This document shows positions 1 to 63,216 of a stretch of DNA of 64,000 bases, piece by piece. Location of the stretch: the NCBI GenBank assembly GCA_965644295.1, contig CBFFRP010000284.1, positions 124,001-188,000 on the forward strand, written 5' to 3'. A model generated the notes under the pieces. It searched no databases. It had not been told where the DNA came from and was given only the letters and a program-made list of their open reading frames with translations. Each line of letters starts with the position of its first letter. Within the stretch, counting starts at the first letter, position 1. The position numbers and the translations under genes are program-made. This DNA is from Paraphysomonas bandaiensis. Lineage: Eukaryota; Protista; Chrysophyceae.

Positions 1-265
1 TGACAACTATGTTAGATACACTTTCTGAATATGAAAAATTCCCAACCTCGCTCGTTTTCACCAGAATAAAACTTCTGAAAAATTTGAATAGCTTCATCCT
101 GCAGTATTCCAGACTCAATTTCATAAGGAGAAGGACTACATCACTGGTGAGTCATGTTTCAAGTTGCCATTTGCATTACCTCTCATGGTGAAGAGACAGA
201 ATCGATCCATTTCCTCCAAATCGTGTATTATGACAACCAAATATAACTTTCCGTACACCTACTCT
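1..265 (-). repeat. Exact direct duplicate of 1119-1383 (3' part of the ADAT2 gene); partial tandem duplication with a 1118-bp period
   Basis: 1-265 matches 1119-1383; ORFs 9..191 and 1070..1309 give the same peptide at offset 1118. Identity ends at CTCT, where the sequence switches into the retroposon. Confidence 0.9.
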
Positions 266-780
266 GGGAAATTAACGTGAGCCGCAAACATAGACCGCAG
301 ATATTCTTCTTCCCAGTCATAACGGAATGCTTGTGTGGTACAAGAGGCACCAATAAGTAAGTGTCACTTGTGTAGAGTGTAGAGTGTAGACGTCGTTGGG
401 CCCTGACGAATAAACAGGCATCTGGGATCTGGCACAGAGCCCACCTCTAGGCATCTGGGGTATTGGACTGTCTACTGAAGTCAAGCATCCAGGCTGTTTG
501 CTGTTCACCTCAAGAACTCAAAAAAACTGAAGTCAGCAGATGTCAGGTATATGAACATACTGCTTTCTCACTGCCTTTGCTTTGAGTGATGGAGTGAAAG
601 TAGTTGCACCTTGGTGCTTTCGGCGACGCACTAGCAGATTCCGTAGTTACAGGTTAGTTAGTTACAGGTGAGTTTGTACTAGTTAGTTACAGGTAGACGT
701 CTATCTAGTTTGACTAGTTTTCATCTAGCTACTAAGCTGGTGCTGAATCTTAACGCCTATTGCTAATAAGAAGACTTTCA
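262..780 (+). mobile_element. Ingi-like short non-autonomous retroposon, copy 1 (long subfamily, 5' end lost at the duplication junction)
   Basis: Colinear with 7343-7827 from CTCTGGGAAA-TAACGTGAGCCGC to TAATAAG-AAGACTTTC. Carries a ~80-nt internal segment (CTGAAGTCAGCAGATG...) shared with the 54.6k, 55.3k and 62.4k copies. Confidence 0.85.
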
Positions 781-1064
781 ATAACAGACCTTGGTGTTTT
801 AGTTGTTAATTTCGATAAACTGCAAGGAACCTCTAACTAACTAAGAAAACTCAACTTAAACGCCTTCTTTAGTTAGACAATCCTATAATAAAGATAGAAA
901 AGCAGAGCATTTAGTGGCCTCGTGCTCTGATATTGGTACCAGGTAAATGGTTGATATTAAAGTTGAACGTCATCTCAGGACAAGAACGATGCAATGATAA
1001 CGACTACTAACATGGTTCCAAAACAGTTAGTGTGTTACTATTACAATTTACAGAACCAAGTCAG

Positions 1065-6667: not shown

Positions 6668-7342
6668 ACGAGACATCGGAAGATGTTAGTATCCTGTTGT
6701 TATTGTCCCTTGTATATTAGTCGCTTTATCGTTAATTACCGACAAGAAAGAGTACATGTAGTTAGCATTTTACGACAGGTTTTAGCGCCACGCCCTCATA
6801 CCATCCTTATCCATTGTGTTAATTAGTGCCCTACACTTGAGTAATAATGCAAAAATGCGAAAGCATATTTAATATCAACCTTGGTGGCACTTTCGTTTGT
6901 AGTGGGTGAAGCGCGAAAATGAAACAGAAAATGATAACTGTTTAGAGTTTTGCCCATTTTATCACTGGGATCGTTGAACGGAAGTTAACTCTTCAGACTA
7001 GACAGGTTTTTCTTTTGCATACACAATTGTGCCATTGCATGAAGTACATCGCAACATAGTTTTAGCTGTGATATAGCAACCACTGTTGAATTATTGTATC
7101 TGCAATTGTCATGATGTATTTAACGAATGGGATATATTATTGGACCTAGCCCAGTAGACGCAATAAAGTGGTGTAAAAACCTAAGTAAATATTCATATTT
7201 GCAATTAACACTTTTACTAGGTAGACTAGATGTTTATAGCAGGGCTGCGTAACAATTAATTGCAATTATTAGCTATAGCTCGCGCAAGTTTTATTGCAAT
7301 TAATTGCAATTTAATAGTGCCAAATTAACTTAATTACTTATT

Positions 7343-7429
7343 CCCTCAACAAAGTCGGACTCGCACCTTTTCGTGGTGTTCTGGGGGATAAGTACCGGAG
7401 TTATTTCTCTGGGAAACTAACGTGAGCCG
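7343..7429 (+). ncRNA. Putative HDV-like (L1Tc/ingi signature-type) ribozyme at the retroposon 5' end
   Basis: P1 CCCTCAAC/GTTCTGGG (2 mismatches); P2 CGG-A-CTCGC/GTGAGCCG; P3 ACC/GGT with L3 TTTTCGT; P4 CCGGAG/CTCTGG; J4/2 CTAA with candidate catalytic C at 7417. Confidence 0.6.
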
Positions 7430-7827
7430 CAAGCATAGTCAGCAGATATTCTTCTGCCCACTCATAGCCGAATGCTTGTGTGGCACAAGGGACACCAATA
7501 AGTGTCACTTGTGTAGACGTCTTTGGGTCCTGACGAATAAACAGGCATCCGGGACAGGGCCCACCTGAAGGGTAATAACCGGGGTATTGGGCTGCCTGCT
7601 GAAGTCAAGCATCCGGGATGTTCACCTTAAGAACTCAGAGCGGAAGTGGCCGCACCTTGGTGCTTGCGGCGACGCACAAGCAGCTTCCGTAGCGTTAAAT
7701 AGTAGGATAAAAAAAGTGTGTACTGATTAGTTACATGTAGACGTCTAACTAGTTTGTCTAGCACTCATCTAGCTACTAAGTTGGTGCAGGTTTTTAACGC
7801 CTATTGCTAATAATAAGACTTTCCATA
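7343..7827 (+). mobile_element. Ingi-like short retroposon, copy 2 (full length, 485 bp), nested in the hAT element
   Basis: Starts CCCTCAAC and ends AGACTTTCCATA. 12-bp TSD TAATTACTTATT (7331-7342) / TAATTACTCATT (7828-7839). Confidence 0.9.
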
Positions 7828-7830
7828 TAA

Positions 7831-8230
7831 TTACTCATTACGAGCAAGTCTAGAATCTTTAATCGTACTTGAATTCCACAGAAATTTATTAAAGCGCAAG
7901 AACATAGGGGACTCTAATCGATGAGGTGCCATAGATTTGCGCAGATCACTCATGTTAATTTTTGCTCTACAAAACACCCTTTCTACACAAATAGTAGTGG
8001 AGTAAATATGCTTCAAGCAGCGGTACTTAGTTAGTTTTTGGTAGTTTGCAGTCGGTTTTGTTCTTGGTGCGCTTGGTGTCTTCTCGCCAGTGAGTCAACA
8101 CCATCATCTTCTTTTTTCTCTCCTTCATCAGTTATGTCCAACAAAAAACGTTTGAGTTGCGCCTTCTCAGGTCGAGTGAGAGTGTCCTCCAACCCGCTTT
8201 GGACTTTCACGACCGTACAAAGAACGCAGT
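7831..8230 (-). pseudogene. hAT transposase C-terminal (dimerisation domain) remnant
   Basis: TTICVERVFCRAKINMSDLRKSMAPHRLESPMFLRFNKFLW fits the hAT dimerisation consensus (S..ERxFS.A......R..L.P...E...FL..N). Upstream VVKVQSGLEDTLTRPEK is in a shifted frame. Confidence 0.75.
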
Positions 8231-20600: not shown

Positions 20601-23600
20601 AGGGTCCTTTTCACACACGACGGACTTCGTCGAGAGCATGCCCTTTGGAAGGCGCGACAAATTATGAGCGAGGTTCTTCGTTTTCAGATTCAGCAGGAAG
20701 CAGTCAAAGAAGGCCACGACAGGAAGGATGTCGTCACTCGCAACTTTGTGGAGAGCAAAGGGTCACACCTTTACATGGCACCTAACCCTACAGACTCGAG
20801 AGCCAATAACGCCCTTGCCGACCTCAAGGTGATATCTGTGATTGGAAAAGATATAGTATTCGAAGGGGGTGGTAGACATATAATATACATTCGCTTTACT
20901 GTCGGCTGTTGGACGGCCAAGACCGTAGCCAAACCCCTGTTGAGCAAGAAACTAAACTGGGAAGACGTAAATATTTCTCTGACCCTCCCAAAACAACGAC
21001 TGCACAGCGACGAAGTGCGTGTAGAGTTGTTTGATGAGAATGAGCTCCGCCAAGACATATGTGTTGGAATGGCAACTAGCCCATTGTCGGTTCTGATGCA
21101 GAAGAATGCAGGAGATCCTGTTGCTTTGGACTTCGATATCAAGGACAGATTCAATGTGCACAGTGGAAACCTGTCGATTACTTTTATAGTAGATCATAGG
21201 GACGATCTAACTGCAGAATCATGCGGAGATAGTGTTCGTGAACATAATAGAGTCAAACTGTCTGAAGAGACTGGGAAGTCAAATTCTACAGTTCGTACTG
21301 TGAACATTGGGGTATCTGTTGGGGATCCTTTAAGCGATAAACATCCTTCTCTCGTGGAAAGTCAAACTTCATTCGCAACTCTTGTAGATGATCTCAGGGG
21401 AGACGGTGCTGATCATGTGAAGCGACTGATTGGGGATATTCATGTGGAAGAAGTGCTGAAACTTGGACACCGAGTGGTTATAAATTCTATGAAGGTGAGT
21501 AAAATATCTCATGTTTTGCTCATATTGATGTTTGTTTCGTAGAAATTGCCTAATTTTAAAATTGCGAACAAGTTCCTGGAGACTAAAGCTAAACTGCATT
21601 ATCATGATGTTAATAACTTCGTTGATGAAACTCAGGAATTATACGTGCTGATTGAACGTGAAATCAAGTTAAAACTTCAAGAAATTGCTAAAAAGAAGGA
21701 GGATTCATCCACTAAGTACCAGACTATGTTAAACAAAAACGCTGACATTTTAGAGGAAGTTAAGAAGATAAATGCCAAGGTAGCTGAAGTTCGAGACCCC
21801 GTTGAGCCTCCTAAAGAGCCTGTATTTGAGCCTTTTCCAGACCTACCATACGTTCCGGAGTTGCCGAAGACGACGGGTCTAGACTCTAAAGGCAAGAAGA
21901 AAAAAGACATGAAAGGCTCTGATATCAAGAAACTAGCGGCTGCTGCTTTGGCTGGAGAACTTGATCAGAAGCCGTGGGATTTCGGAGAGCGTTGGCCGAA
22001 CAATTCTCAAATGACAACTCTAAAGAAAGCAGCTGATACTCGTAACAAAGAAATGGATGAGGAACGAGCGAAGGAGCAGGCCGCTCGAGACCGTGCTATG
22101 GAGTTTTTTACCTCGGCGATGCAGAAATGGGAAATAGAGGACAGAGCTCGGAGGAATGAGTATGAGCGCATGAAGAAAGAGTCTAGAAGAATATACCTAA
22201 AGCTGGACTGCGTCAATGAGCGACAGGCTATCATGCATAAAGAGGTTGCTGGGTACGAGGAAGAGGCGGCTGTGTGGACGCGATTCTTGGATTTCCATAT
22301 GCAGTCAAAGGAGAGGGTGGCTGTGATGCGTGCTAAGCAGCATATGGAAAATGAGCGACAAAAAAGCGTAATGAAAAATATGACTAAGAAATTGTTGGCT
22401 TTATTAGATGCACGCCGACGTGCATACAATCTACCACTAACTGCGTTGAACGAAGTTGAATACCAGGAGTTCTGTGAAAAAGCAGACATTGCTTTAAGAA
22501 CCCTTCGTTTTGAAATCTTAGATTGCAAGCAGCAGCTAATTGCTGAAGGTGTGCGGTTGAGAAACACCTACGATGAGGAGATTTGCTGCTTGAAAAGTGA
22601 GCTCAGCCGCACAAGAATGTTGAGGGAAGTACTGAAGCAAAAGAATTGCATCGATCAGATAGTAGATAGACACAAATACGAGGCGTACAACTTGCTGGAG
22701 GATATGGAAAAGTTGAAGCTAGTAGAGGCTGACAAGGACGACAGAGGAGTTGACGATACTATCGATGACATGGGAGAAAGATACAAAATTGATAAAGTTT
22801 GGTCGAGTCCTGAGATAACTAAGACGAAGAAAATGGTAGACCTGATAATGGGCAAAATCAACCTCACGCAAGGAATGAAAGATTCTGCTGCTATGAGTCA
22901 GCAATGCCTCTTCGAAGTGATGTCAGTTAAGTGGGCTGTTGAATTTGCGCCAGTAAGGGACTCGTGGTGCGAAAACTCAGACTACGAAAGGTCTCAAAAG
23001 TATCTATACGATATGGTGCAGTGGCTTGCCTTGCAGAGAGAAAAGTTAGCCGAGCGAGAGCAGGAGTTTGAGTTGGTGAAGGAACGGGCCAAAATAGAGT
23101 TATTAGCAGTGCAAGATTATATGAAAGTGTCCCGTGAATGTCATGATACGGATACAACTTTGATAACTGAAAGTTCGTCCAAAGTCATCGACGTTGTTCG
23201 AGAACAAATGGTTAAACGAGATGCAGAGTATAAGAAGCATATCTTATCGCTCGAAGAAAATATAACGAATCTTTCCAGAGAATGTCATGAAGTCCGGGAA
23301 GAAAAATACAAACAAGCCCTAAATTTTAACAGCAAAGTTGAATCACTGCTTTCTCTTGTTGCGACTCTGCAAACTACCCTGGAACACCAGTCTGCAGTCA
23401 TGGAAATGGTCAAAGAAGAGCGAGATGAAGTTGTTCTTAAAACTCGTCTGGCATCGGACAGGTTACGTTATCAATTGAGACTAGAAAGGAAGCACTGCGC
23501 GAACCTGTTGTTTATTATACATGCCCAGCGAGCTGTCGTGCAGCGGTTAAACCTCTCTATTACCCAAGGACAAGACCTCCTGGCGGAAAAGGAAAAGCAG

Positions 23601-26180
23601 TGGAAGGCAGAGAGAAGAGAACTCAGGTTGAAAATATGGGAGCAAATGTTCGCTTTTGCTCGTCTTAATACAGACGTTGATGACCTCTTCGAATTCTTTG
23701 CGTGTCGCGTAGCCAATTTATCTGGTGCCCGAAAGTCGATTAATGATAGATTGCGGGAAAATGGGGCTGCTTTGGTGTTCTCAGCCATGTGTCGCAGCCC
23801 ACGTCAGCTTATTCGTAAGTATGCCTCACGAGCGCTTGCAGGCATTGGTTGGGACGGCTACGTTGAGACAAGGGTGATAATGTGGGACTGCATGATGCAG
23901 TGGAAGGTTTACAAAGACCGTATATTGGCAGAGGACAATTCAAGGTTCGACCACGTGCAAGAGCACTTTGTAGAGACAGGGTCAACGGCGGCACTCGCTA
24001 ACTTTGAGCCGCCCCCACCTCAGGAAACTGAATTTCAGCCTGCCCCTAATGCCAGTCTTCGCACTATTATAAAACAGAAAAGACAATGGGCGTTGCGAGC
24101 TCAAAGAAGAAGAGAGGGGCCTAATCTCGAAAATATGCGGAAAATCAACATGGTGGATGGAATCATTCCAACACTTATATCACTTTGTAATGAGGACGGT
24201 AAAGTAGATTGGGAGATCGTGCGTAATGCATCTTTGGCTATCAGTGTTGCCTCCTACGAGGAGGCTAATCTAAACGAAATGGTTGACAACAGTAGCTGTA
24301 TTAACTTGGTGACACGGCTGTGTCGTGATGACGACGCAGAGATCAAAACGCACGGTGCAGTCATTTTAGCTAATATGTGCCATGAAAACGAGCACGCACA
24401 GATTATGTTCGGGCAAGAGGGTGCAATCCGAGTACTACTCGACATGTGTGCATCGTCTATTCCGGACACAATTGAGGCGGCTACTGCCGCACTTACAAAC
24501 TTGACCTGCTTGTGTGATCCTAATTGCCTGAAGTTCCTTGAAGAAGGCGGTGTGGAGGAAATGGTGAAGCTTCTGACAAGTGTGCGCAGCGAAAACTTCA
24601 TGGACACTGATCAGAATGACGAGGTCCAATCCAATGCCTCAGAGATACTAGCGAATATTAGCAGATTTGACTGTGATCTGACCATTCAACACTTCAATGG
24701 AAATGTGATCGATGTGTTGATTCTGGCGTGTGCATCTGTGAATTCTATGGTGAGGAAGCATTGCCCGCTTATCCTGGGCAACATTTCGCAAAGCGAGTGG
24801 TGCCGAAGCGAGATTGGAAAGCGGGGAGGAATTGAAGCTTTGTTTCTTGCTTTAGAAGACAAGGACCGAGCTATCCAGGCGAATGTGTTGTGGGCGCTAT
24901 GCAATTTAATGTGGCACCCTCCCAATCAGGAGAGAGCGGGCAGGTTCATTGCTGAAATTATCCCGTTCTTAACTTTCCCGTGGCTACCAGTGCAGACGAA
25001 CGCGTGTATATTGATTGCCAACGTTTTGTATTACAATAATCCAAATCGCGTTCGGTTTCTCGAGTTCGAGGGATCGATGGAGCTCCTAGTGGACTTAGTG
25101 CGGAAAAACAGTGACTGGGCAGTCACCGAAGCATGCCTTCGTGCACTACTGTCGGTGTCATATATTGATGCTGCAAGCTTATGGCTTGGGACGGACGGAG
25201 ACTGCGTTGAGCTATTCGTTGAGTATCTACAGCCACATGTAATTCCTACGCAGAGTTTTTGTTCCCGATATGCATTGGAGATTATAAATAACATGTGCGT
25301 TCACCACACCGTGCGCCGTAAAATTCTAGACACAGGGGGAACAGATAGTGTCGTTGCAATGCTCGCGCATGAGGATGTTAACGTTCAGGAGACAGCACTG
25401 CAGGTCATTGGCCTTCTAGAGGATGTTACTCCGCCTGAAGTCCTGGCTAAAGCAAAGAAGGACATGGGCATTGAGCGCATGGTCACTCTAACCTCTGACA
25501 AGGATCCTTTAGTGCGTGCAGTGGCTGCCGAGTCCGTTGGTGAGGAGGTATGGCGTGATCCGAATAAGCAGAAGGTGGTAAATGAGCTTGGTGGAGTGGA
25601 GAGTCTACTGGCGATATGCAAGAATCCGACTGAGAATCTGACATCCGTACTGCCAGCGCTTTGGTCCCTGCGTAATTGCCTGCACAACAATCCCACTGGG
25701 CAGATGCAATTTAGAGAATGTGATGGGTGTATGATTGTAATGCGCGTTCTTAATCGGTGCTTGACCGGCGAATTCACAGATCAGAGTGAGAAGGTATTCG
25801 AGTCTTGTCTTGCCTGTCTTTTTGCCGCGATTCACAGCCACGAGCGAAATTCGAGACGCCTGCTTCAAGTGGGACTTGACATGCTGATGGATTTGGCGGA
25901 AGGTCGACTGGCAGATTCAGTCGGTGCCTCAAAAGAGGTACGGAAGGGATTGAGTGCTGTTGGAGTTGTCGCACTAGCAAAATCTATTCTTTCGGCTCTT
26001 GGACCTTACAATTACGTAGTTTGTAAAAATTGTCACAAAAGGCAAAATCTTTGTGGAACTCATTGTATATCGTGTGGCTATTTATTTTTCGTTGATATGT
26101 CGATGGATGGCATGGATGGAAAGGGAAAAGAGGGGTCTGCTAAGTATGATAAACGGAAGGTACGGAAACCCTTTAAATAG
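17679..26180 (+). CDS. ~2799-aa coiled-coil / WW x3 / C2 / armadillo-repeat protein with a C-terminal Cys4 zinc ribbon (3 exons)
   Basis: Introns 20529-20582 and 21495-21542 join three ORFs in frame. WW-like segments (WTTEYDEYGRQFFQHSETGETEWEEP), a C2-like segment (VELFDENELRQDICVG), ARM repeats (GGIEALF...ANVLWALCNL) and CKNC...CISC. Confidence 0.85.
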
Positions 26181-26787
26181 GGAAAAACATTTTATTGATA
26201 TTTGTATAGTAATAAAGTATTGATGCGAATACAGGACATTGCTTTTTTACTTATTTATATGTTAGTAAATAGTATAAAACGCGTGTCTGAATGGGAACAC
26301 TCTGTCATGTGAAAAATACAGTGGTTGGCAGCAGTAGTAATACAAAGCAACGATTTAGCGCAACCAGTTCATAAGAATGAGTGTTAAATTGGATATCAAC
26401 AACGTAAGCTGCAAATAAGATTAAAGGTTAGTCTTGGTATTTAGTAAGGATACACTTGATATTATTAGAGATAAAGATTGAGTGATAAGGCCTAATAGTA
26501 TAATAGCAAGACACGTTTGAGCAGAGCGTTAGCACCACACACATGTGCGTATCTTGTATAGTCGCGTAATAGCTTAGTAATTATTCAGTCTATTTAGTAT
26601 TTCATCGTACATGTGTTGCATTCACGCGTTAAGGGATATAACGTGAATCAATGACTCTTAATAGATGCGATTATAAACCTTTTCTGTAGAGCTACAACGT
26701 ACAACCTCATCATATGGCTATCAAATTTTGACATTGTGTATTGGCTTTGGAACATTTTGTTGGTTTAGATCGTTAAAGAAAAGTGAT

Positions 26788-27276
26788 ATATATATTGAAA
26801 GTCTTATTATTAGCAATAGGCGTTAAAAACCTGCACCAACTTAGTAGCTAGATGAATGCTAGACAAACTAGTTAGACCTCTACCTGTAACTAATGAGTAC
26901 ACACTTTTTTTATCCTACTATTTAACGCTACGGAAGCTGCTTGTGCGTCGCCGCAAGCACCAAGGTGCGACCACTTCCGCTCTGAGTTTTTAAGGTGAAC
27001 ATCCCGGATGCTTGACTTCAGCAGGCAGCCCAATACCCCGGTTACCCTTGAGGTGGGCCCATTCCCGGATGCCTATTTATTCGTCGGGGCCCAAAGACGT
27101 CTACACAAGTGACACTTATTGGTGTCCCTTGTGCCACACAAGCATTCGGCTATGAGTGGGCAGAAGAATATCTGCTGACTATATGTTTTCGGCTCACGTT
27201 ACTTTCCCAGAGAAGTCTCTCCGGTACTTATCTCCCAGAACACCACGAAAAGGGACGAGTCCGACTGTGTTGAGGG
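26788..27276 (-). mobile_element. Ingi-like short retroposon, copy 3 (full length, 489 bp)
   Basis: Reverse complement of copy 2. Perfect 13-bp TSD AAAGAAAAGTGAT (26775-26787 / 27277-27289) and an (AT)n tail. Confidence 0.92.
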
Positions 27277-27519
27277 AAAGAAAAGTGATGTCGTTTTATT
27301 ATTGCATAGACAATTGTGTGGTTCTTGTAACGCATATCGTATGTATCAGAATAGCTCATTTAAAGAATTCTACTGCTTATTTTATTAAAACTGAATTACC
27401 TTTTTCTAGTGACAGAAAACACTTATTTACGATTAAAATAACAGAGCAAACGGGCAAACGTGACACTTAACAAAATTCGGTGAACTATGGTCCAGAAAAA
27501 CGGCTTGCACGTAATGAAA

Positions 27520-28372
27520 CTACGGGTCAGGTTTTCTCCACTTCACAGGCCCTGTATGCAGTGTTCCAAATATTTTGTCTAGAAGTTGCATCTCGGCATA
27601 ATTACAGTGTGTCAGCTGCGAGAAAAGCATTAATATAGCGGATATTAATTATTCCATTTACCTGATGATGAGTTAGATGATACTCGGCGTCCAAAAACCA
27701 CGATCCCGGAACTACAGCATTTGAGTGATCACATACACCTAAACAGCATTGCATGCTCCAAATGCCGGCTAGTACTACTGAAGGCACTGGGGTCAGTATC
27801 ACAGGGATAAGGAAAGTCCCAATGACCTCCATTACAAAAAACTCAATAGGGTGATCATTGAAAGTTGCAAAGGGTGTCATTCTTTCTGGAGTTATATGAT
27901 GCATCTTATGTAAAGCTTTATATAAAGGAGGCTGATGCAACAGTCTGTGTGCGCCCATACGCCATATGAGTCCGATGAAAATCCCCAGAGGGATACCGAC
28001 CCATGTGAGTGGAGATGAATAGAATGACGTGATATCAAGAGGGTCCGTTAATACGAGTTTAGATATCTTAAAATATTTGATTATGAGTACAGACGCAGGC
28101 AGTAACACTAACAAATCTCTTGCAGATGATTGGATATGTCCACTGAGATCGCGAAGAGTCCATTTGGAACTTACAAGTAAGTAATGAGGGTTATATCTGA
28201 AATATACAGTCATGACTGCAGCTAAACTAAAGTATGATATCCACACAGCCACCAGCGGCCCTATAAACGCACTGGTTGCTTCTGTATAGAGGATTAATAC
28301 CGCTGTACAAACCTTCCATAGTAATGAAGTCATAAAGAACCCTGTCTGAGAAATATCTTGAAGGGTTACCAT
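27520..28372 (-). CDS. Fatty-acid hydroxylase / sterol desaturase superfamily protein (2 exons)
   Basis: His boxes HRLLH, LHKMHH, DHS, HLTHH. Last exon LTHCNYAEMQLLDKIFGT follows an intron. Confidence 0.85.
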
Positions 28373-32945: not shown

Positions 32946-34758
32946 TTTACTTTCAGTTATAGTTTATTTAACCGATTGAGTTGCATTACTTGTTTGAAGC
33001 AAGATTATGAACTTAAGAATAATGTAGCAAGATTCAGTGTACAAAAAATTGAAAAGAACTTTTGCTGCTAAACAATTGTTTTGAACCTGTGAACCATTCG
33101 TGCACACAGCGGCATATTTTACTCTAAATTGTAAGTAGTATGGAATCAATCCTGCTTACATTTTTTATTTTCATTGACGCAATTGGTGACATACATCAAC
33201 GTGCGTTGTTGTATTAATAATCTTTGACAAGCATTACCTTAAGGACTCGTAGGCAAAAGTTATTTTGATGTCTAAATTCTAAATATACTTTCAGTTTATA
33301 GATAACTTTAGATATTATGTTGTCTCTACATAACAATGCTTATTTACTACATTTATCTTACGAAAGAGTCTGGAATAACTATCGTGCATGAAACTATTGA
33401 GTTGTACGTACAATCTTCTCTCATATTTTCCCTTATGCTACAGTAGCACGCATTGGGTGTTGAAATATGTGGTATGTGGTGTACTGCATATATTATATCT
33501 ACTAATGGTACGACATATTTTGAGGCAAAATAGCATCATTATTGGAAATAAGAGTAATGGACATATTAGGTCTAAGTTTATTAGAGTTACGATGTAAACT
33601 GGCAAAGTTTTAGTTAGAGTTAGTAACCACGAGTCGACAATCACTCATAGAGTGAGTATGTGATACTCTGTATATAATTTTCTATCTTGTTCAAACGACT
33701 TTGACATAGCTTAATAGCAAGACGATCACACAGCAACATAATAAGAACTCAGGAGTGAAAGGAACACAAAAACCAATTTTGACGTATTGAAATTGTTTTC
33801 ACGTAGAAAATTTCATCGCAACCATGGCTGCGTAACAAGTAATTATTTTTCAATTAATAGAATATATTTACTATTACCAATTTGAATACGTATATAGTAA
33901 CTACACATAATCATAAGCGGTACAATCAACACGTGGCTAGCTAAAAGTTGGTACTTTTTTTGTAAAAATTATTATAGAATAATAAATATGTTGTGTTCAA
34001 ATGTGTTCACTCTGAGTCCGACAGACTGAATAAACAATCAGCCGGCCTGGTAGAAAGAACGCTTCATTGACAAAGTCAGATACATGCACAAGCAGATCTA
34101 GATTATTCGTGATGGCGAATCACCATTTCTCAACAGCAAATCTGATTTAATACAAAAACAAATGATAAGATTGTTATTATTGATTTTCGCAAGCAAATGA
34201 CACCTCTAGATACCTGAAAAATGTTGATGATTCTGCATGCAAATAGGCATCTTTGGGATGCAATTTAGATCATAAAGCCAGCAGTAATGATCTGAGTGCT
34301 GCGACCGCACCTATACCTATGTACAAACTTCTTAGTTCGGCACTTCCCCACCCGGGTTCTCACTGCATATTCAGCGCTAAATTCCATGTGATACGATGTA
34401 GCTAGTTGGGTTCAGTAGGTATAGCTAGCAAATAACGTATGACTTAAATGCATGAATATTATGTTGAGAGAAAGAATGGTCTACCAGCCTACTTCAGCAT
34501 TGGAAACATCGATGGAGTTTTGCCTATCTATGCTGCTATATACCTCTCCTTAGCTTTGTTTTGACCTGATGTATGATGCATTGGTTCTACGGCATCTGCT
34601 ATATGACCTCATGCTTCTGTAATGCGTAGCTATATGCGAGTACAATTCATGACTAGGTTTAATACTATAATTAGCTAGGTTGAGTCATTTATTGCTTTGT
34701 CTAGGTTTTTACACCGAAAATAGAATGACTAGGAAATTCAACCAAATTGACAAGGTTG

Positions 34759-34948
34759 TAGTGAATGTCTGATTATTTAGCAATAGGCGTTGAGACCTTG
34801 CATCAATTAGTGGCTAGAAGAATGCTAGTCATACTAGTTAGACCACTACCCGTAACTAATCAATACAAACTCTTTTATCCTACTATTTAACGCTACGAAA
34901 GCTGCTTGTGCGTCGCCGCAAGCACCAAGGTGCAACCACTTCCGTTAA
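34759..34948 (-). mobile_element. Ingi-like short retroposon, copy 4 (5'-truncated, ~190 bp)
   Basis: Matches only the 3' ~185 nt of the family. Flanked by an 11-bp TSD TGACAAGGTTG (34748-34758 / 34949-34959). Confidence 0.88.
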
Positions 34949-35543
34949 TGACAAGGTTGAATAATATATTAGTTAGATCCCCACCCGGCTCTACCTAAGT
35001 ACGCGCTCAGAATAGTTCATCAGTCACTCCTATATCTTATATAGTCACACATCAGTAACTCAATTTAATTCCATTGTAACTGTAGTCACCCGTTTAGGAG
35101 TTGACTTCACCTATTCACTTCAACTGCACAATATATATCACATCATATTGCAGAACTCAACAAGCAGTAATGATATATCAAAATTGCTGATATGACTGCA
35201 GTCATTGCATGTTGTTGAGAGTTGAAAATAGCCCTTTTCATTTTGTAACAGGAAATAATAATTGCGATTATAATTCACTTCAGCCCTGAATAATTCAACC
35301 TGAAGTACTACTTATAACTATTTATAATGGAAAAGCAGATCATTTCAACATTGAACCTTATATACGTAGCCATTTCTATGTTAACTGTAACAAAGCTGAA
35401 CTGAGTTTTAAGTGAAACATAATAAAATTTCAAAGCCTTTCTAATTATTAATACAGAGTGTGCTTCCACATGAAACACCATATCCTACACATAATATAGT
35501 CATTTTCACAACAAACATATCTAACACTTGAAGAACAAGAATA

Positions 35544-54631: not shown

Positions 54632-55058
54632 CATTAAACTAAGTCGAACTGGCACCATTTAGTGGTGTTATGGAGTTATGAAGGATAAGTACCAAAGAAA
54701 CTACCGTGGGCCGCATATACAGCCAGAAAATAATTTCTGCCTACTCATAGCCCAATGTTTGTGTAGACATATTTGAGCCCTGACGAATAAACACGTATCC
54801 TGTAATGGGCCCACCTCAAGGGAATCCGGGGTATTGGGCTGCCTGCTGAGGTCAAGCATCCAGGATGTTCATCTTAAGGACTCAAAAATCCTGAAGTCAG
54901 CAGATGTCATGTATATCAATATTCTTCTTTCTCACTGCGTTTGCTCTGAGTTTGAGTGATAGAGCGGAGGTGGTTGCACCCTTGGTGCTTGCGGTGACGC
55001 ACAATTACCTTTTGTAGCGTTAAATAGTACGATATCAAGGTTAAGCACTAGTTTGTTA
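54632..55058 (+). mobile_element. Ingi-like short retroposon, copy 5 (diverged 5' end, 3' end missing)
   Basis: AAGTCG-ACT-GCACC-TTT-GTGGTGTT...GGATAAGTACC...GAAACTA-CGTG-GCCG, then a body colinear with the other copies. Confidence 0.85.
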
Positions 55059-55295
55059 AAAATGGCAATGCTAAATTAGTTCTAACTCTTCGACGCTTTC
55101 GACATACATTGTATAGACTTTACTAAAACTAATTCAACTTACAATAACTGAATTAATAAATAGTAACAATAAGTTTACAACATCGTCTATATTCGTCACT
55201 AAAAACAATCATGTCAAACCATACATATTCTCTAAATCTTTGAAGGGATACCGTTCTCAGTTATGATCAGGTCCTCTTTTCCATTGACGTATATA

Positions 55296-55812
55296 TATAT
55301 GAAAGTTTTATTAGTAGTAGTAAGAGGCGTTAAGAATCTCCACCAGTTTAGTAGCAAGATGAATACTAGTCAATAAGCTATCTACCTGAAACTAACTAGT
55401 GCTTAACCTTGATATCTTACTATTTAACGCTACGAAAGGTTATTGTGCAACCACCTCCGCTCTATCACTCAAACTCAGAGCAAACGCAGTGAGAATGCAT
55501 CTGCTGACTTCAGGATTTTTGAGTCCTTAAGATGAACATCCTGAATGCTTGACTTCAGCAGGCAGCCCAATACCCCGGATTCCCTTGAGGTGGGCCCATT
55601 AAAGGATACGTGTTTATTCGTCAGGGCTCAAAGACGTCTACAGACAGTACTTATTGTTGTTTCTTATACCACACAAGCATTCGGCTATGAGTGGGCAGAA
55701 CAATATCTGCTGTCTATGTTTTCGGCTCACGTTAGTTTTCCGGAGAAATATCTCCGGTACTTATCCCCCACCAGAACACCATGAAAAGGTGCGAGTCCGA
55801 CTTTCTTGAGGG
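55296..55812 (-). mobile_element. Ingi-like short retroposon, copy 6 (full length)
   Basis: TSD CATTGACGT(A/G)TATA (55282-55295 / 55813-55826), (AT)n tail, 5' CCCTCAAG and a perfect P4 hairpin CCGGAGA/TCTCCGG. Confidence 0.9.
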
Positions 55813-56410
55813 CATTGACGTGTATACGGTTACTGTATACAATCACTTTCAGTTATACTAAATATTTGTTAGTTAACTGTGATCTCACATAATACATAAT
55901 GTCATACATTGATATGCGATATATACTTATTGTACTGTATTATGTATTTTGCACTGCAAATAGTACCATCATTTACATTCATTTCTTAACGGCTACTTAA
56001 ATGTGCAATTCATAAACGTCATAAACTACATATTAGATAAACTGTGTAGCATCATCATCATCAATAATAATTGCATTCATCATTTTGTAAACTGTTACCC
56101 ATTACGTAAGCCTGTCGGATGGATGTTCACTTCTTGGGTGTGATGGATGGTAGTAGCAGAGGTTGAATCGAAAATCTAATATCGACAATATTCCCCTTCC
56201 AGTGTAACATCAACACTGTCGCTTTGATAGCAGCGTACGGATTACTTCATACGTACTATCGTACGATTATATATATTTATCATATAAGCCGTTTGAATAG
56301 CAATATAACCATTTGAAAAGCCATTTCCTAGCTAAACTATACAACTATGACAAAGATCGATCTTACATGTAACATGTAATGCTGTACATCTGTTTAAAAA
56401 TCCGATGCTA

Positions 56411-61814: not shown

Positions 61815-62419
61815 CGTTTGTCGTCGTAGCGACAAATGATGTGGAATCTATGTTAAAATTACAACAACACCTACATACGTACTACTAGCTACTGCGTATT
61901 TATCGCTGATAGCTTCGTAGTCTGTACTTTTGTTGAGTAAAATTCCAATAATAGACAATTTCAACAGTTGGAGGAGTAAAATTCGCAAACAAATTGGAAA
62001 TATAGTATCTATGAATGTATAATATAGTGTTGGTGATTGCTGCTGTGCAGCAACCCCATTATCACAATTGCAATAATTTCCCCTTACAATATTCAGCAAG
62101 TGCCCTGTCTAACTAATAACTAACATAAAAGTAAATACCTTCTTTCGGTAATGTTGCCTCATATATTGCCTGATACTTCTTATGTTCTTAATAGATATCG
62201 CACTGTTTCTCGACAATACTATGAGTACTATTAGGTATACGCTATAATATCTGAAGAGTTGTATTGTTTACAGTTTACGATATACGATTGCAACAAACAA
62301 TTGGCTCTTCGCTTATTACTAATTACTATGGTATGATTTATATTAAGTTACCATGCAGAGTGAATGCACATTCAGGATTAAGACGACTATCATAACCCTG
62401 TAGGATTTCAGATAGCTGT

Positions 62420-62845
62420 GAATGTCTTATTCTTATTATTGTTTGCAATAGGCATCATGTAAAAGTCAGAACTAATTTCGCTTAGGAATTTAACTTACTA
62501 GTGATTAACTCTGAACTCTATTATTTTAGTATTTAACTCTCTACGTAAGCTGCTTGTGTGTCACCGCAAGCATCAAGATGCAACCACTTTCGCTTTATTT
62601 AGTATTCCATGCAAACGCATCTACTGATTTCAGGATTTTTGAGTCCTTTAAGGTAAACAGCCCTGATTCTTAACTTTAGCAGGTACCCCAATACCCCGGT
62701 TGCCCTTCAGGTGGGCCAAGTCGTCCCGGATACATGTTTATTCGTCAAGGCCCAAAGACGTCTTCACAAGTGGCACTTATATCGTACCACACAAGCATGA
62801 TCAGGCTATGAGTGGGACGAACGTTATCAGCTGACTATATATGGG
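62420..62845 (-). mobile_element. Ingi-like short retroposon, copy 7 (old, diverged, 5'-incomplete)
   Basis: Shares GCAATAGGC, AAGCTGCTTGTG-GTC-CCGCAAGCA, CCAATACCCCGGT, TTTATTCGTC and GGCTATGAGTGGG blocks. No clear TSD. Confidence 0.8.
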
Positions 62846-63216
62846 TTTCATGTTTCATATCATGCAGCTTTTTGATTGTATTAAGCAATACATCATTTAT
62901 GTTCATTGATCAAGTGAGGGTACCTCATACCTATGACAGTAATTACTGCTTACAGTAATTTTCAGAAACCAATTTAAATTAAAAGATATTACCAGTAGTA
63001 CGGGTGATTAAAATGACGTAGCACGTGAACAAAATAAAAACACGATCGGTAGAGATAACGAATAACTAGCCACAAGTCAGATATGTCTAATAAATAAAAA
63101 ACTTGTATCTTATAATTTACTCATACCAGTTAATATCACATATACATCTCAGGCTCAAGGGAAATCAGTAGGACGCCTAAGTAGCAGACCACCTTGTGCG
63201 CTCGTCTAAGTGAAGT

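Follow-up and report, generated by a model that had tools for sequence, protein, structure and literature searches.

An abundant ~480-base retroposon family in Paraphysomonas bandaiensis with a predicted HDV-like ribozyme head

The repeat at positions 26788-27276 of the window (the whole 64-kb stretch of P. bandaiensis DNA analysed here) raises the question of what kind of mobile element it represents and how such an element is copied. We consider it likely that the repeat is a non-coding, non-autonomous non-LTR retroposon, a SINE in the broad sense, which is built like the R2 SIDEs or NARTc/RIME. This judgement applies to one joint claim that takes together the retroposon class, a ribozyme head, a LINE-copied tail and the corresponding life cycle. 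The ~480-base family is a further case of a known parasite-of-a-parasite design and not a new kind of element.

Copies, ends and target sites

A blastn search of the window with positions 26775-27289 (minus strand) as the query recovers every one of the seven copies listed in a preliminary description of this DNA. When the window is compared with 38 loci sampled from the genome, repeats are confined to 259-787, 7333-7834, 26781-27278, 34753-34946, 54637-55096, 55288-55818 and 62418-62854. The reference copy (26788-27276, minus strand) is a ~483-nt member of a young, long-tail subfamily and is slightly decayed, as evident by the changes G44>A and GCACC>GTCCC in its head (stems P1 and P3, respectively, of the fold described below). 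It is flanked on the same strand by a 5′ target site duplication (TSD) at 27277-27289 and a 3′ TSD at 26775-26787, both ATCACTTTTCTTT, although the initial AT of the latter is indistinguishable from the (TA)n tail. A second full-length copy (7343-7827, plus strand) has an intact head that passes our fold descriptor and lies between the TSDs TAATTACTTATT (7331-7342) and TAATTACTCATT (7828-7839). The full-length copy at 55291-55812 (minus strand) belongs to an older subfamily with 75% identity to the reference, and its TSD is ACGTCAATG (55282-55290 and 55813-55821).

The remaining copies are old or truncated. An old, degenerate full-length copy of the short-tail form occupies 54637-55125 (plus strand); all positions given previously were found again, but this copy, which was thought to span from 54632 to 55058, ends near 55125. 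The copy at 34759-34948 (minus strand) consists of the tail only, in a variant that resembles the tail of a second family (family B, below), and carries an 11-bp TSD, CAACCTTGTCA (34748-34758 and 34949-34959). Two older copies are likewise truncated at their 5′ ends: the one at 259-783 (plus strand), which carries an extra 71-nt segment, at approximately element bases 66-75, and the short-tail copy at 62419-62854 (minus strand) at approximately bases 88-106. No clear TSD is present at the copies starting at 259, 54637 and 62419, which are 5′-truncated or old. Four of the seven copies therefore have TSDs, of 9-13 bp, as had been claimed.

The family extends far beyond the window, as the preliminary description had anticipated. 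A first look yields 3448 candidates genome-wide, and all 40 that were scored are full-length with 92-96% identity. A 32-base word from the head has 1013 genome matches and a 32-mer from the 3′ end has 586 at up to three mismatches, versus none for the reversed-pattern control in either case. In three DNA runs the element exceeds its flanks in summed contig depth by a factor of 10^3-10^4. In a probable RNA run the element is present at a summed depth of 134-2808, versus zero for a neighbouring repeat and for the intergenic DNA, in data that consist of assembled contigs and are unable to show RNA ends. At 26788-27276 no empty site was seen, since the insertion is present in contigs of each of the organisms B, C and D, and hence no polymorphism was observed. 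Divergence between copies is even along the element (2.6-3.0% per region), which is the expectation for neutral decay, and conservation among copies is thus uninformative on function. Within the 483-nt majority sequence no open frame exceeds 86 amino acids.

The ends of the element are polar and, as proposed earlier, fixed: copies begin with CCCTCAAC and finish with ...TAATAAGACTTTCAATA(TA)n. Among 29 distinct full-length copies in the genome, approximately 24 are flanked by TSDs that differ in sequence and span 10-16 bp (mostly 12-14), and most of these TSDs begin with TA or AT and are fused with the (TA)n tail. Truncation is anchored at the 3′ end, as evident by the window copies at 259, 62419 and 34759, which miss 66 to 310 bases and keep the tail. 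The element is short, non-coding and abundant, as MITEs (remnants of DNA transposons), solo LTRs and dispersed satellites might also be. However, it has neither terminal inverted repeats nor LTRs, its TSDs vary in length where a fixed length would be expected, and its copies have polar ends, 3′-anchored truncation and a microsatellite tail and are dispersed rather than tandem. The pattern of TSDs and truncation effectively refutes these origins, to which we assign a negligible probability.

Descent from a tRNA, 5S or 7SL gene, as in a classical Pol III SINE, is also very improbable. The element is indeed SINE-like in its size, its copy number and its reliance on a LINE-type tail, but ARAGORN detects no tRNA in it, Rfam yields no family match at gathering or E<=10 thresholds, a B box is lacking, and a single loose match at base 139 is all that resembles an A box. 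Such an origin is effectively refuted, and the reported absence of inverted repeats, LTRs and tRNA A/B boxes is upheld apart from that one match. Variable TSDs of 10-16 bp, a TSD-bearing 5′-truncated copy, a simple-repeat tail, the lack of TIRs or LTRs and the lack of a Pol III origin together support copying by target-primed reverse transcription. This was the mode already suggested for a non-coding retroposon, and its TSDs are present genome-wide.

The predicted ribozyme head

The first ~90 nucleotides of the element fit an HDV-like ribozyme fold comprising P1, P2, P3/L3, P4 and a J4/2 segment with CUAA, and cleavage is predicted to occur exactly at element base 1. This head corresponds to 27187-27276 (minus strand) in the reference copy, where it is mutated, and to 7343-7432 (plus strand) in the copy that provides an intact ribozyme candidate. 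In the latter, P1 is formed by bases 1-6 and 40-45, P2 by 14-20 and 83-88, and P3 by 22-25 and 33-36, accompanied by the L3 sequence UUUUCGU, a P4 hairpin and the J4/2 sequence GGAAACUAACGU. The arrangement is a nested double pseudoknot in which P1 begins at base 1 and the 7-nt L3 has U at its first and G at its sixth position. The putative catalytic, unpaired C of J4/2 (C-N-R-A) lies within GGAAACUAA in all sampled heads. Subfamilies carry three variants of P4, and the stem is kept in each of them.

A generic HDV-type descriptor, written after the sequence had been seen, yields 29 matches in ~394 kb, 24 of which coincide with the start of sampled copies, 21 at base 1 and 3 at base 2, and it is fitted by only 1 of 200,000 shuffled heads. 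No curated Rfam model of the HDV family matches the head at gathering or E<=10 thresholds, and such models cannot score pseudoknots. None of the above-threshold Rfam matches is to an L1Tc-type family.

The L1Tc ribozyme is experimentally active (PMC3185411, PMC4748587), and its sequence was rebuilt for comparison from the primers given in these reports. The core CACC-N4-CGUGGUG...GGAA(A/G)CUAA is common to the head, to the L1Tc ribozyme, to two metagenome types and to three copies from Lapillicoccus. The search pattern fixed P3, L3 and J4/2, which are not counted as support, and did not require pairing in P1, P2 or P4. A helix comparison by script across these distant ribozymes finds that P1 (7 bp) and P2 (7-9 bp) of the comparison sequences differ in sequence and yet are complementary. 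P4 likewise differs and yet pairs in the SINE, L1Tc and the two metagenome types, with the Lapillicoccus copies compared at P1 and P2 only. Seven other prokaryotic matches to the pattern have neither P1 nor P2, and viral contigs contain no match to it. The metagenome and bacterial examples have exactly the J4/2 motif of the head, and L1Tc has GGAAGCUAA.

The head nevertheless departs from canonical HDV-like ribozymes. Its P1 has six base pairs including one G-U pair, its P2 consists of 3+3 base pairs around a bulged A, and at most one pair is available for a candidate P1.1. In addition, the linker UUC, three bases long (six in some older copies), joins P3 to the 3′ strand of P1, whereas the comparison sequences have none. 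Because of this atypical P1, linker and P2, cleavage activity could be weak or lost.

An alternative is that the head is mainly or only a Pr77-type internal RNA polymerase II promoter that starts transcription at C1 with the aid of a CGTG element farther downstream (+30 to +33), and that the ribozyme-like fold is inactive or secondary. This has precedent in L1Tc, where the same 77 nucleotides act as both a ribozyme and a promoter with a CGTG downstream element (PMC3383444, PMC4748587). The SINE head does carry CGTG at +30 to +33, inside L3/P3, and its 3-nt linker and interrupted P2 deviate from the canonical fold. However, CGUG is part of the L3/P3 core of every ribozyme compared, including bacterial examples for which a eukaryotic downstream promoter element is meaningless, and no Inr-like TCAGT is found at +1 of the element. 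We therefore regard a head of the promoter type as unlikely and favour the HDV-like fold as its main identity. Promoter and ribozyme functions of the head are not mutually exclusive.

The element was first read as an ingi/RIME relative, with the CCC start as a hallmark. The fixed CCC stands, but it is base 1 of the HDV-like fold, which had been missed. Compared with the Pr77 hallmark, the element has in common the CCCU start, AG(C/U)CGG and the P3/L3 and J4/2 core, and other identity is too short to judge. Because a bacterium and unrelated metagenome contigs carry this core as well, its sharing with L1Tc/ingi Pr77 is, as far as these comparisons reach, a mark of ribozyme class and not of kinship with ingi. 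The retroposon design and the ~12-bp TSDs of the earlier reading hold, whereas the host falls outside the trypanosomatids, the tail ends in (TA)n and not poly(A), and the core is general to HDV-like ribozymes. The genome is also unlike the trypanosomatid type, as evident by a canonical 46-nt GT-AG intron, genes on both strands and many RT matches. One protein of the window is on record from MMETSP.

The tail module and the search for a partner LINE

The 3′ module has a core of ~73 nucleotides (26912-26984, minus strand, in the reference copy) with an outer stem GCGGAAG/CUUCCGU, a hairpin with a CUUG loop and a hairpin with a GNRA loop. Its layout is GCG-GNRA-CGCACAAGC...TAATAA..GAC(A/T)TTCA(A/C)TA(TA)n, in which the terminal stretch reads ...TAATAAGAC(T/A)TTCA(A/C)TA(TA)n; the terminal motif of the reference copy is AACGCCTATTGCTAATAATAAGACTTTCAATA(TA)n (26788-26822, minus strand). 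The outer stem varies among G-C, G-U and A-U pairs, and covariation is modest, with the observed score reached by 15 of 500 shuffles. The core folds no better than shuffled sequences (z of -0.1 to -0.6), and its exact pattern has no match in metagenome contigs.

Judged by sequence, the tail is a module common to at least two other short families. One of these, family B, is exemplified by L021:2368-2892 (TSD ATAGCACATTTC; 506 first-look candidates), and both family B and a third type join other 5′ parts to the same tail as the ribozyme-headed family. The 326 nucleotides upstream of the tail in L021 were considered as the 3′ region of a LINE and rejected, as they belong to family B, a separate short family with a fixed 5′ end of its own. 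Subfamilies of the ribozyme-headed element itself also differ internally. In many contigs element bases 380-465 are swapped for 25-32 other bases, which bears out the earlier report of two subfamilies distinguished by an internal segment of ~80 nt, and at element base 307 older copies are longer by 71-76 bases. A relative of 1.06 kb (L004:2086-3144, TSD AACAGTAGTTGC) agrees with the element in the head and throughout the first ~385 nt, and then continues with ~600 nt of different sequence before a related tail that is shorter. The genome contains 98 copies of this relative, 78 of which are exact for a 32-mer, and its unique ~600 nt form a homogeneous family of their own.

The genome contains APE and RT matches at no fewer than 40 places, with open frames of 1000-3731 amino acids free of stops, and words from the element were cross-checked by coordinate against these places. 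Among the matches listed, exact head words, family B and the 1.06-kb relative show no fixed offset from APE/RT places, and the cross-checks found no LINE sharing both ends of the element. One exact head word on contig C25 that appeared to be linked to a LINE was rejected, as it belongs to the 1.06-kb element. The top APE matches (L061-L066) were likewise rejected as LINEs and are cellular CCR4-like genes. Searches with PF00075, PF13456 and PF14529 found no LINE domains.

These data bear on whether the element arose from one LINE by simple internal deletion (RIME/NARTc-like or SIDE-like), with head and tail representing that LINE's own ends, or is a chimera of a free-standing ribozyme module and a borrowed LINE tail. 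The 1.06-kb relative, with its shared head and first ~385 nt and its related shorter tail, and the 71-76 additional nucleotides at the junction in older subfamilies suggest stepwise deletion. On the other hand, the exact head matches listed show no consistent spacing upstream of APE/RT places, and the unrelated heads on the same tail in other families fit tail capture. Moreover, the unique part of the 1.06-kb relative does not lie downstream of LINE RT matches, except for an adjacency on contig C373 that is isolated in the complete list of 98 matches, is unrepeated in that LINE group and was set aside. Derivation from a single LINE by deletion is therefore possible but somewhat doubtful.

Proposed life cycle and relation to known retroposons

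A life cycle for the non-autonomous retroposon favoured here can be proposed as follows. The element would be transcribed, probably within longer host or read-through transcripts, and its first ~90 nucleotides would fold as the HDV-like nested double pseudoknot that is supported by comparison. The folded head would then cut the RNA directly 5′ of C1, giving the same first base in every full-length copy. The 3′ module, consisting of the ~73-nt structured core and the terminal motif, would be bound by the reverse transcriptase of a resident APE-type LINE, the putative partner. This enzyme would nick targets that start with TA or AT, where the UAUA end of the RNA could anneal, and copying of the RNA in place would generate the 10-16 bp duplications and frequent 5′ truncations whose footprints are observed.

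In stringent-type SINE/LINE pairs, such as UnaSINE1/UnaL2 of eel, both partners have a structured 3′ tail that finishes in a short repeat. The element resembles these pairs in having a conserved 3′ stem-loop region and a terminal short repeat that are reused within one genome by several unrelated non-autonomous families. However, their heads are of Pol III type (tRNA or 5S), whereas the head here is ribozyme-like, and that of family B is neither.

The NARTc, RIME and SIDER elements, which are trypanosomatid derivatives of L1Tc/ingi with a Pr77/L1TcRz head, are similarly short, non-coding and high in copy number, with TSDs of ~12 bp. They too start with the C of CCCU, devote their first ~80-90 nt to an HDV-like ribozyme that cleaves at element base 1 (as predicted here), and carry the P3/L3 core (CACC-N4-CGUGGUG) and J4/2 (GGAA-N-CUAA). 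The present host, by contrast, is a marine protist with introns and not a kinetoplastid, the tail has a structured core and CAATA(TA)n in place of poly(A), the sequences of P1, P2 and P4 differ, and a 3-nt linker separates P3 from P1. SIDER2 in Leishmania has reportedly been proposed to help shape mRNA 3′ ends. By analogy, the head could be an active HDV-like ribozyme at 1000 or more intergenic places in a free-living stramenopile, cutting read-through transcripts and shaping mRNA 3′ ends, and could with its LINE be a true relative of the L1Tc/ingi 5′ module by deep ancestry or protist-to-protist transfer, but we consider this combination quite improbable.

R2 SIDEs of Drosophila are internally deleted R2 elements and R2/R1 hybrids, which are non-coding, as the present element is (PMC3414825). 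Their 5′ end is defined precisely by an HDV-like ribozyme, and their 3′ segment is bound by the LINE protein to initiate target-primed reverse transcription, two features that are putative in the present element. R2 is site-specific in 28S rDNA and uses a restriction-like endonuclease, whereas the copies described here are dispersed in intergenic DNA at targets starting with TA or AT, have TSDs of 10-16 bp typical of APE-type LINEs, and are two to three orders of magnitude more numerous. Small self-cleaving RNAs also process the transcripts of other retroelements, as they are predicted to do here, with hammerheads in Penelope-like elements and retrozymes and twister variants in LINEs and SINEs of Schistosoma (PMC4209133, PMC8501958). 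The present class, however, is HDV-like and lies exactly at the 5′ end, and nothing points to tandem or circular RNA intermediates.

Copies of the element make up perhaps 1-2% of the genome, in intergenic DNA, and should be masked and modelled as a family in annotation. With more than 1000 natural variants of an HDV-like ribozyme that has an unusual P3-P1 linker, the family offers material for studies of activity. Its tail would serve as a reusable 3′ ‘ticket’ for several short families, and once the partner LINE is found, the rules of RNA recognition become testable. Ribozyme-headed non-autonomous retroposons have so far been found mainly in insects (R2 SIDEs) and trypanosomatids (NARTc, RIME and SIDER). 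A family of more than 1000 copies in a marine heterotrophic protist would indicate that this design is more widespread.

Copies, abundance and mode of insertion

The reference copy of this short retroposon, hereafter the SINE, lies on the minus strand at window positions 26775-27289, where the flank ATCACTTTTCTTT is followed by CCCTCAAC, ~489 bases of element ending in TAATAAGACTTTCAATATATATAT, and an identical flank. A blastn search of this stretch against the window recovered every other copy named in the preliminary description. When the window was compared with 38 genome loci around other copies, its only repeated stretches were 259-787, 7333-7834, 26781-27278, 34753-34946, 54637-55096, 55288-55818 and 62418-62854. 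The copy boundaries first proposed were mostly right, except that the copy starting at 54632 reaches ~55125 and that two copies are truncated. Target-site duplications (TSDs) had been reported at four copies, and these are indeed present, with lengths of 13, 12 (one mismatch), 11 and 9 bp; the three copies without such flanking duplications are 5′-truncated or old. All seven sit between long ORFs. The reference copy is directly adjoined by another repeat (26340-26741), which in DNA runs sums to a contig depth ~200-600 times that of its flanks, reads 0 in a probable RNA run and is missing from 68 sampled loci.

The window corresponds to C284:124001-188000, a contig interval in an assembly of 62.6 Mb. 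Genome-wide there are 3448 first-look candidates for the element, and all 40 that were scored are full-length, with 92-96% identity. A 32-base word taken from the 3′ end matches the genome 586 times (at most three mismatches) and a head word of equal length 1013 times, compared with 0 for the reversed patterns. In contigs from three DNA runs, the element's summed depth exceeds that of its flanks by a factor of 10^3-10^4. The family is real and abundant, and it is probably undescribed; a literature search returned no paper tying HDV-like ribozymes to stramenopile retroposons. In the young subfamily, 30 sampled copies diverge from their majority sequence by 2.8% (1.5-4.1%), and the differences are spread uniformly over the element.

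With 483 nt and 48% G+C, the majority sequence carries neither an open frame longer than 86 aa nor a B box. An ARAGORN search of the window for tRNAs came back empty, Rfam yields 0 matches in the window at gathering thresholds and nothing relevant for the element at E<=10, and the element has neither terminal inverted repeats nor LTRs, in agreement with the initial reading of its termini and tRNA boxes. TSDs of 10-16 bp, mostly 12-14, flank ~24 of 29 distinct full-length copies, and because most start with TA or AT they run into the (TA)n tail. A DNA transposon was rejected because TSD length is variable, the ends are polar and truncation is 3′-anchored, and these same footprints are indicative of insertion through target-primed reverse transcription, driven by an APE-type LINE. 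We found no empty site, as each of the three other DNA data sets compared carries the 26788-27276 insertion.

A predicted HDV-like ribozyme at the head

The majority head sequence, CCCUCAACAAAGUCGGACUCGCACCUUUUCGUGGUGUUCUGGGGGAUAAGUACCGGAGAGAUUCUCUCUGGGAAACUAACGUGAGCCG, which covers the first ~90 nt of the element, can be folded into an HDV-like architecture. In this predicted fold, P1 pairs bases 1-6 with 40-45 (CCCUCA/UGGGGG), P2 pairs bases 14-20 with 83-88 (CGG-A-CUC/GAGCCG), and P3 pairs bases 22-25 with 33-36 (CACC/GGUG), with UUUUCGU as L3, CCGGAGAG/CUCUCUGG as P4 and GGAAACUAACGU as J4/2. A generic descriptor of this architecture matches 29 sites on both strands of ~394 kb (window plus loci), 24 of which start sampled copies (21 on base 1 and three on base 2), and is fitted by one in 200,000 head shuffles; since it was written after the head sequence was known, these figures measure specificity and are not an unbiased test. 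P1 and P3 are mutated in the reference copy (26788-27276) and intact in the copy at 7343, and P4 occurs in three variants across subfamilies, with the stem kept and the loop altered. Three bases separate P3 from the 3′ strand of P1, compared with six in some older copies.

For comparison with L1Tc, a trypanosomatid LINE, we rebuilt its first 77 nt from primers and text (PMC3185411, PMC4748587), bases 16-24 being less certain as they were read from a mutant table. The two heads have in common the CCCU start, the P3/L3 core CACC-N4-CGUGGUG and the J4/2 sequence GGAA-N-CUAA. The L1Tc head also has promoter activity, with CGTG as a downstream element (PMC4748587), and the SINE, which carries CGUG at +30 to +33, might have a head that is only a promoter. 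We rank this as a minority view because CGUG belongs to the ribozyme core in all cases, and favor the ribozyme reading.

A search for the core letters only, with no pairing demanded of P1, P2 or P4, matched JGI metagenome contigs at five loci that represent two sequence types (L069:4730-4814, L072, L070:1011-1085, L071:41-115 and L073:902-976). Both types are canonical HDV-like ribozymes that carry the SINE-head core, with fully complementary P1 (7 bp) and P2 (7-9 bp). P4 pairs throughout in the L070 type and with one mismatch in the L069 type. In sequence, these helices are unrelated to the SINE and L1Tc helices. Loci of the L070 type agree over the 40 nt that precede the ribozyme and diverge downstream of it, so this ribozyme may stand at the end of a conserved unit. 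At L069, a 1242-aa ORF with a weak match to Ulp1 protease stops 58 nt before the ribozyme.

Seven of ten matches in prokaryotes were dismissed as chance, having no P1 or P2. The remaining three are nearby copies on the bacterial chromosome of one Lapillicoccus sp. MAG (OZ255840.1; L076, L078 and L082), with a 7-bp P1, (A/G)GGCGAC/GUCGCCU, a 7-bp P2, L3 UCUACGU and J4/2 GGAAACUAA. By sequence comparison, the HDV-like fold is real for the class and the SINE head is a predicted member, albeit the least canonical of the compared set, with its 6-bp P1, the linker between P3 and P1, and bulged P2. Because the common core is general to HDV-like ribozymes, it is no evidence of kinship between the SINE and ingi/L1Tc.

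A tail module and the elements that carry it

The last ~190 nt comprise a conserved 73-nt core, a variable segment and a terminal motif. The preliminary description distinguished two subfamilies by an ~80-nt internal segment, and this division holds: the long form of the variable segment has 86-90 nt, in place of which the short form has 25-32 nt. In its best fold, the core forms two hairpins, one with a CUUG loop and the other with a GNRA loop, besides an outer stem. Across families the GNRA loop reads GCGA, GUGA or GCAA, and one outer-stem pair is G-C, G-U or A-U across subfamilies. Statistical support for this fold is modest: 90% of cells pair, versus 28-66% with slid partners, covariation at least as high as observed arises in 15 of 500 shuffles, and fold stability is no better than that of shuffles.

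This tail is modular and recurs in other elements. Family B is a retroposon of ~525 nt (L021:2368-2892, plus strand; TSD ATAGCACATTTC) with 506 first-look genome candidates, in which the SINE tail follows an unrelated, C/A-rich 326-nt 5′ part that has its own fixed start and no ribozyme fold. The family B junction is found in RNA-run contigs. A third type (L007/L010) has in common ~90 nt upstream of the core.

A non-coding relative of 1.06 kb (L004:2086-3144, minus strand; TSD AACAGTAGTTGC) begins with the SINE head and first ~385 nt, continues with ~600 nt of its own, and ends in a shorter tail in which the terminal motif and the GNRA hairpin are retained; none of its ORFs exceeds 75 aa. This relative is young, as evident by exact matches to a 32-mer in 78 of its 98 genome copies. 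Most copies contain ~128 nt absent from the L004 copy. Older 0.5-kb copies retain 71-76 nt of the longer element at the junction, an arrangement suggestive of stepwise internal deletion.

Expression, candidate partners and design

Coding words from the window are present in marine poly(A) metatranscriptomes, and one window protein is recorded in MMETSP. A contig joint in the RNA run reveals a canonical 46-nt GT-AG intron (27616-27661, minus strand) in the gene at 27602-28372 (minus strand), whose mRNA contig extends to 27396, leaving 120 nt to element base 1. Given this intron and genes on both strands of the window, the host genome is not of the trypanosomatid type. At the end of ORF 21546-26180, the RNA-run contig terminates precisely with the final base of the TAG stop codon (26178-26180), which could mean that the 3′ UTR is very short or that the assembly breaks there. 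The element is probably transcribed, because contigs holding it sum to a depth of 134-2808 in the probable RNA run versus 0 for intergenic DNA and the neighboring repeat; these are assembled contigs, which cannot show RNA ends.

Pfam searches located at least 40 genome places where RT and APE domains lie ~2 kb apart on the same strand, in stop-free open frames of 1000-3731 aa that form at least three score groups. Coordinate cross-checks gave no consistent offset between these places and head words, family B or the 1.06-kb element. The proposed mobilization in trans by an APE-type LINE is thus grounded in the traces left by insertion and in the occurrence of LINEs of this type in the genome. 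Long simple-repeat runs whose frames spell TYIH... (L061:1-280 and L062:1-440) lie upstream of two paralogous, intron-containing CCR4/nocturnin-like endonuclease-fold genes.

The original analogy to RIME-like trypanosome elements fits the element's probable way of working, but as a claim of kinship it is probably mistaken. From its sequence, the element is of a known design, a short retroposon with a predicted ribozyme head and a putative dependence on a LINE tail, which is also that of the R2 SIDEs and of NARTc, RIME and SIDER.
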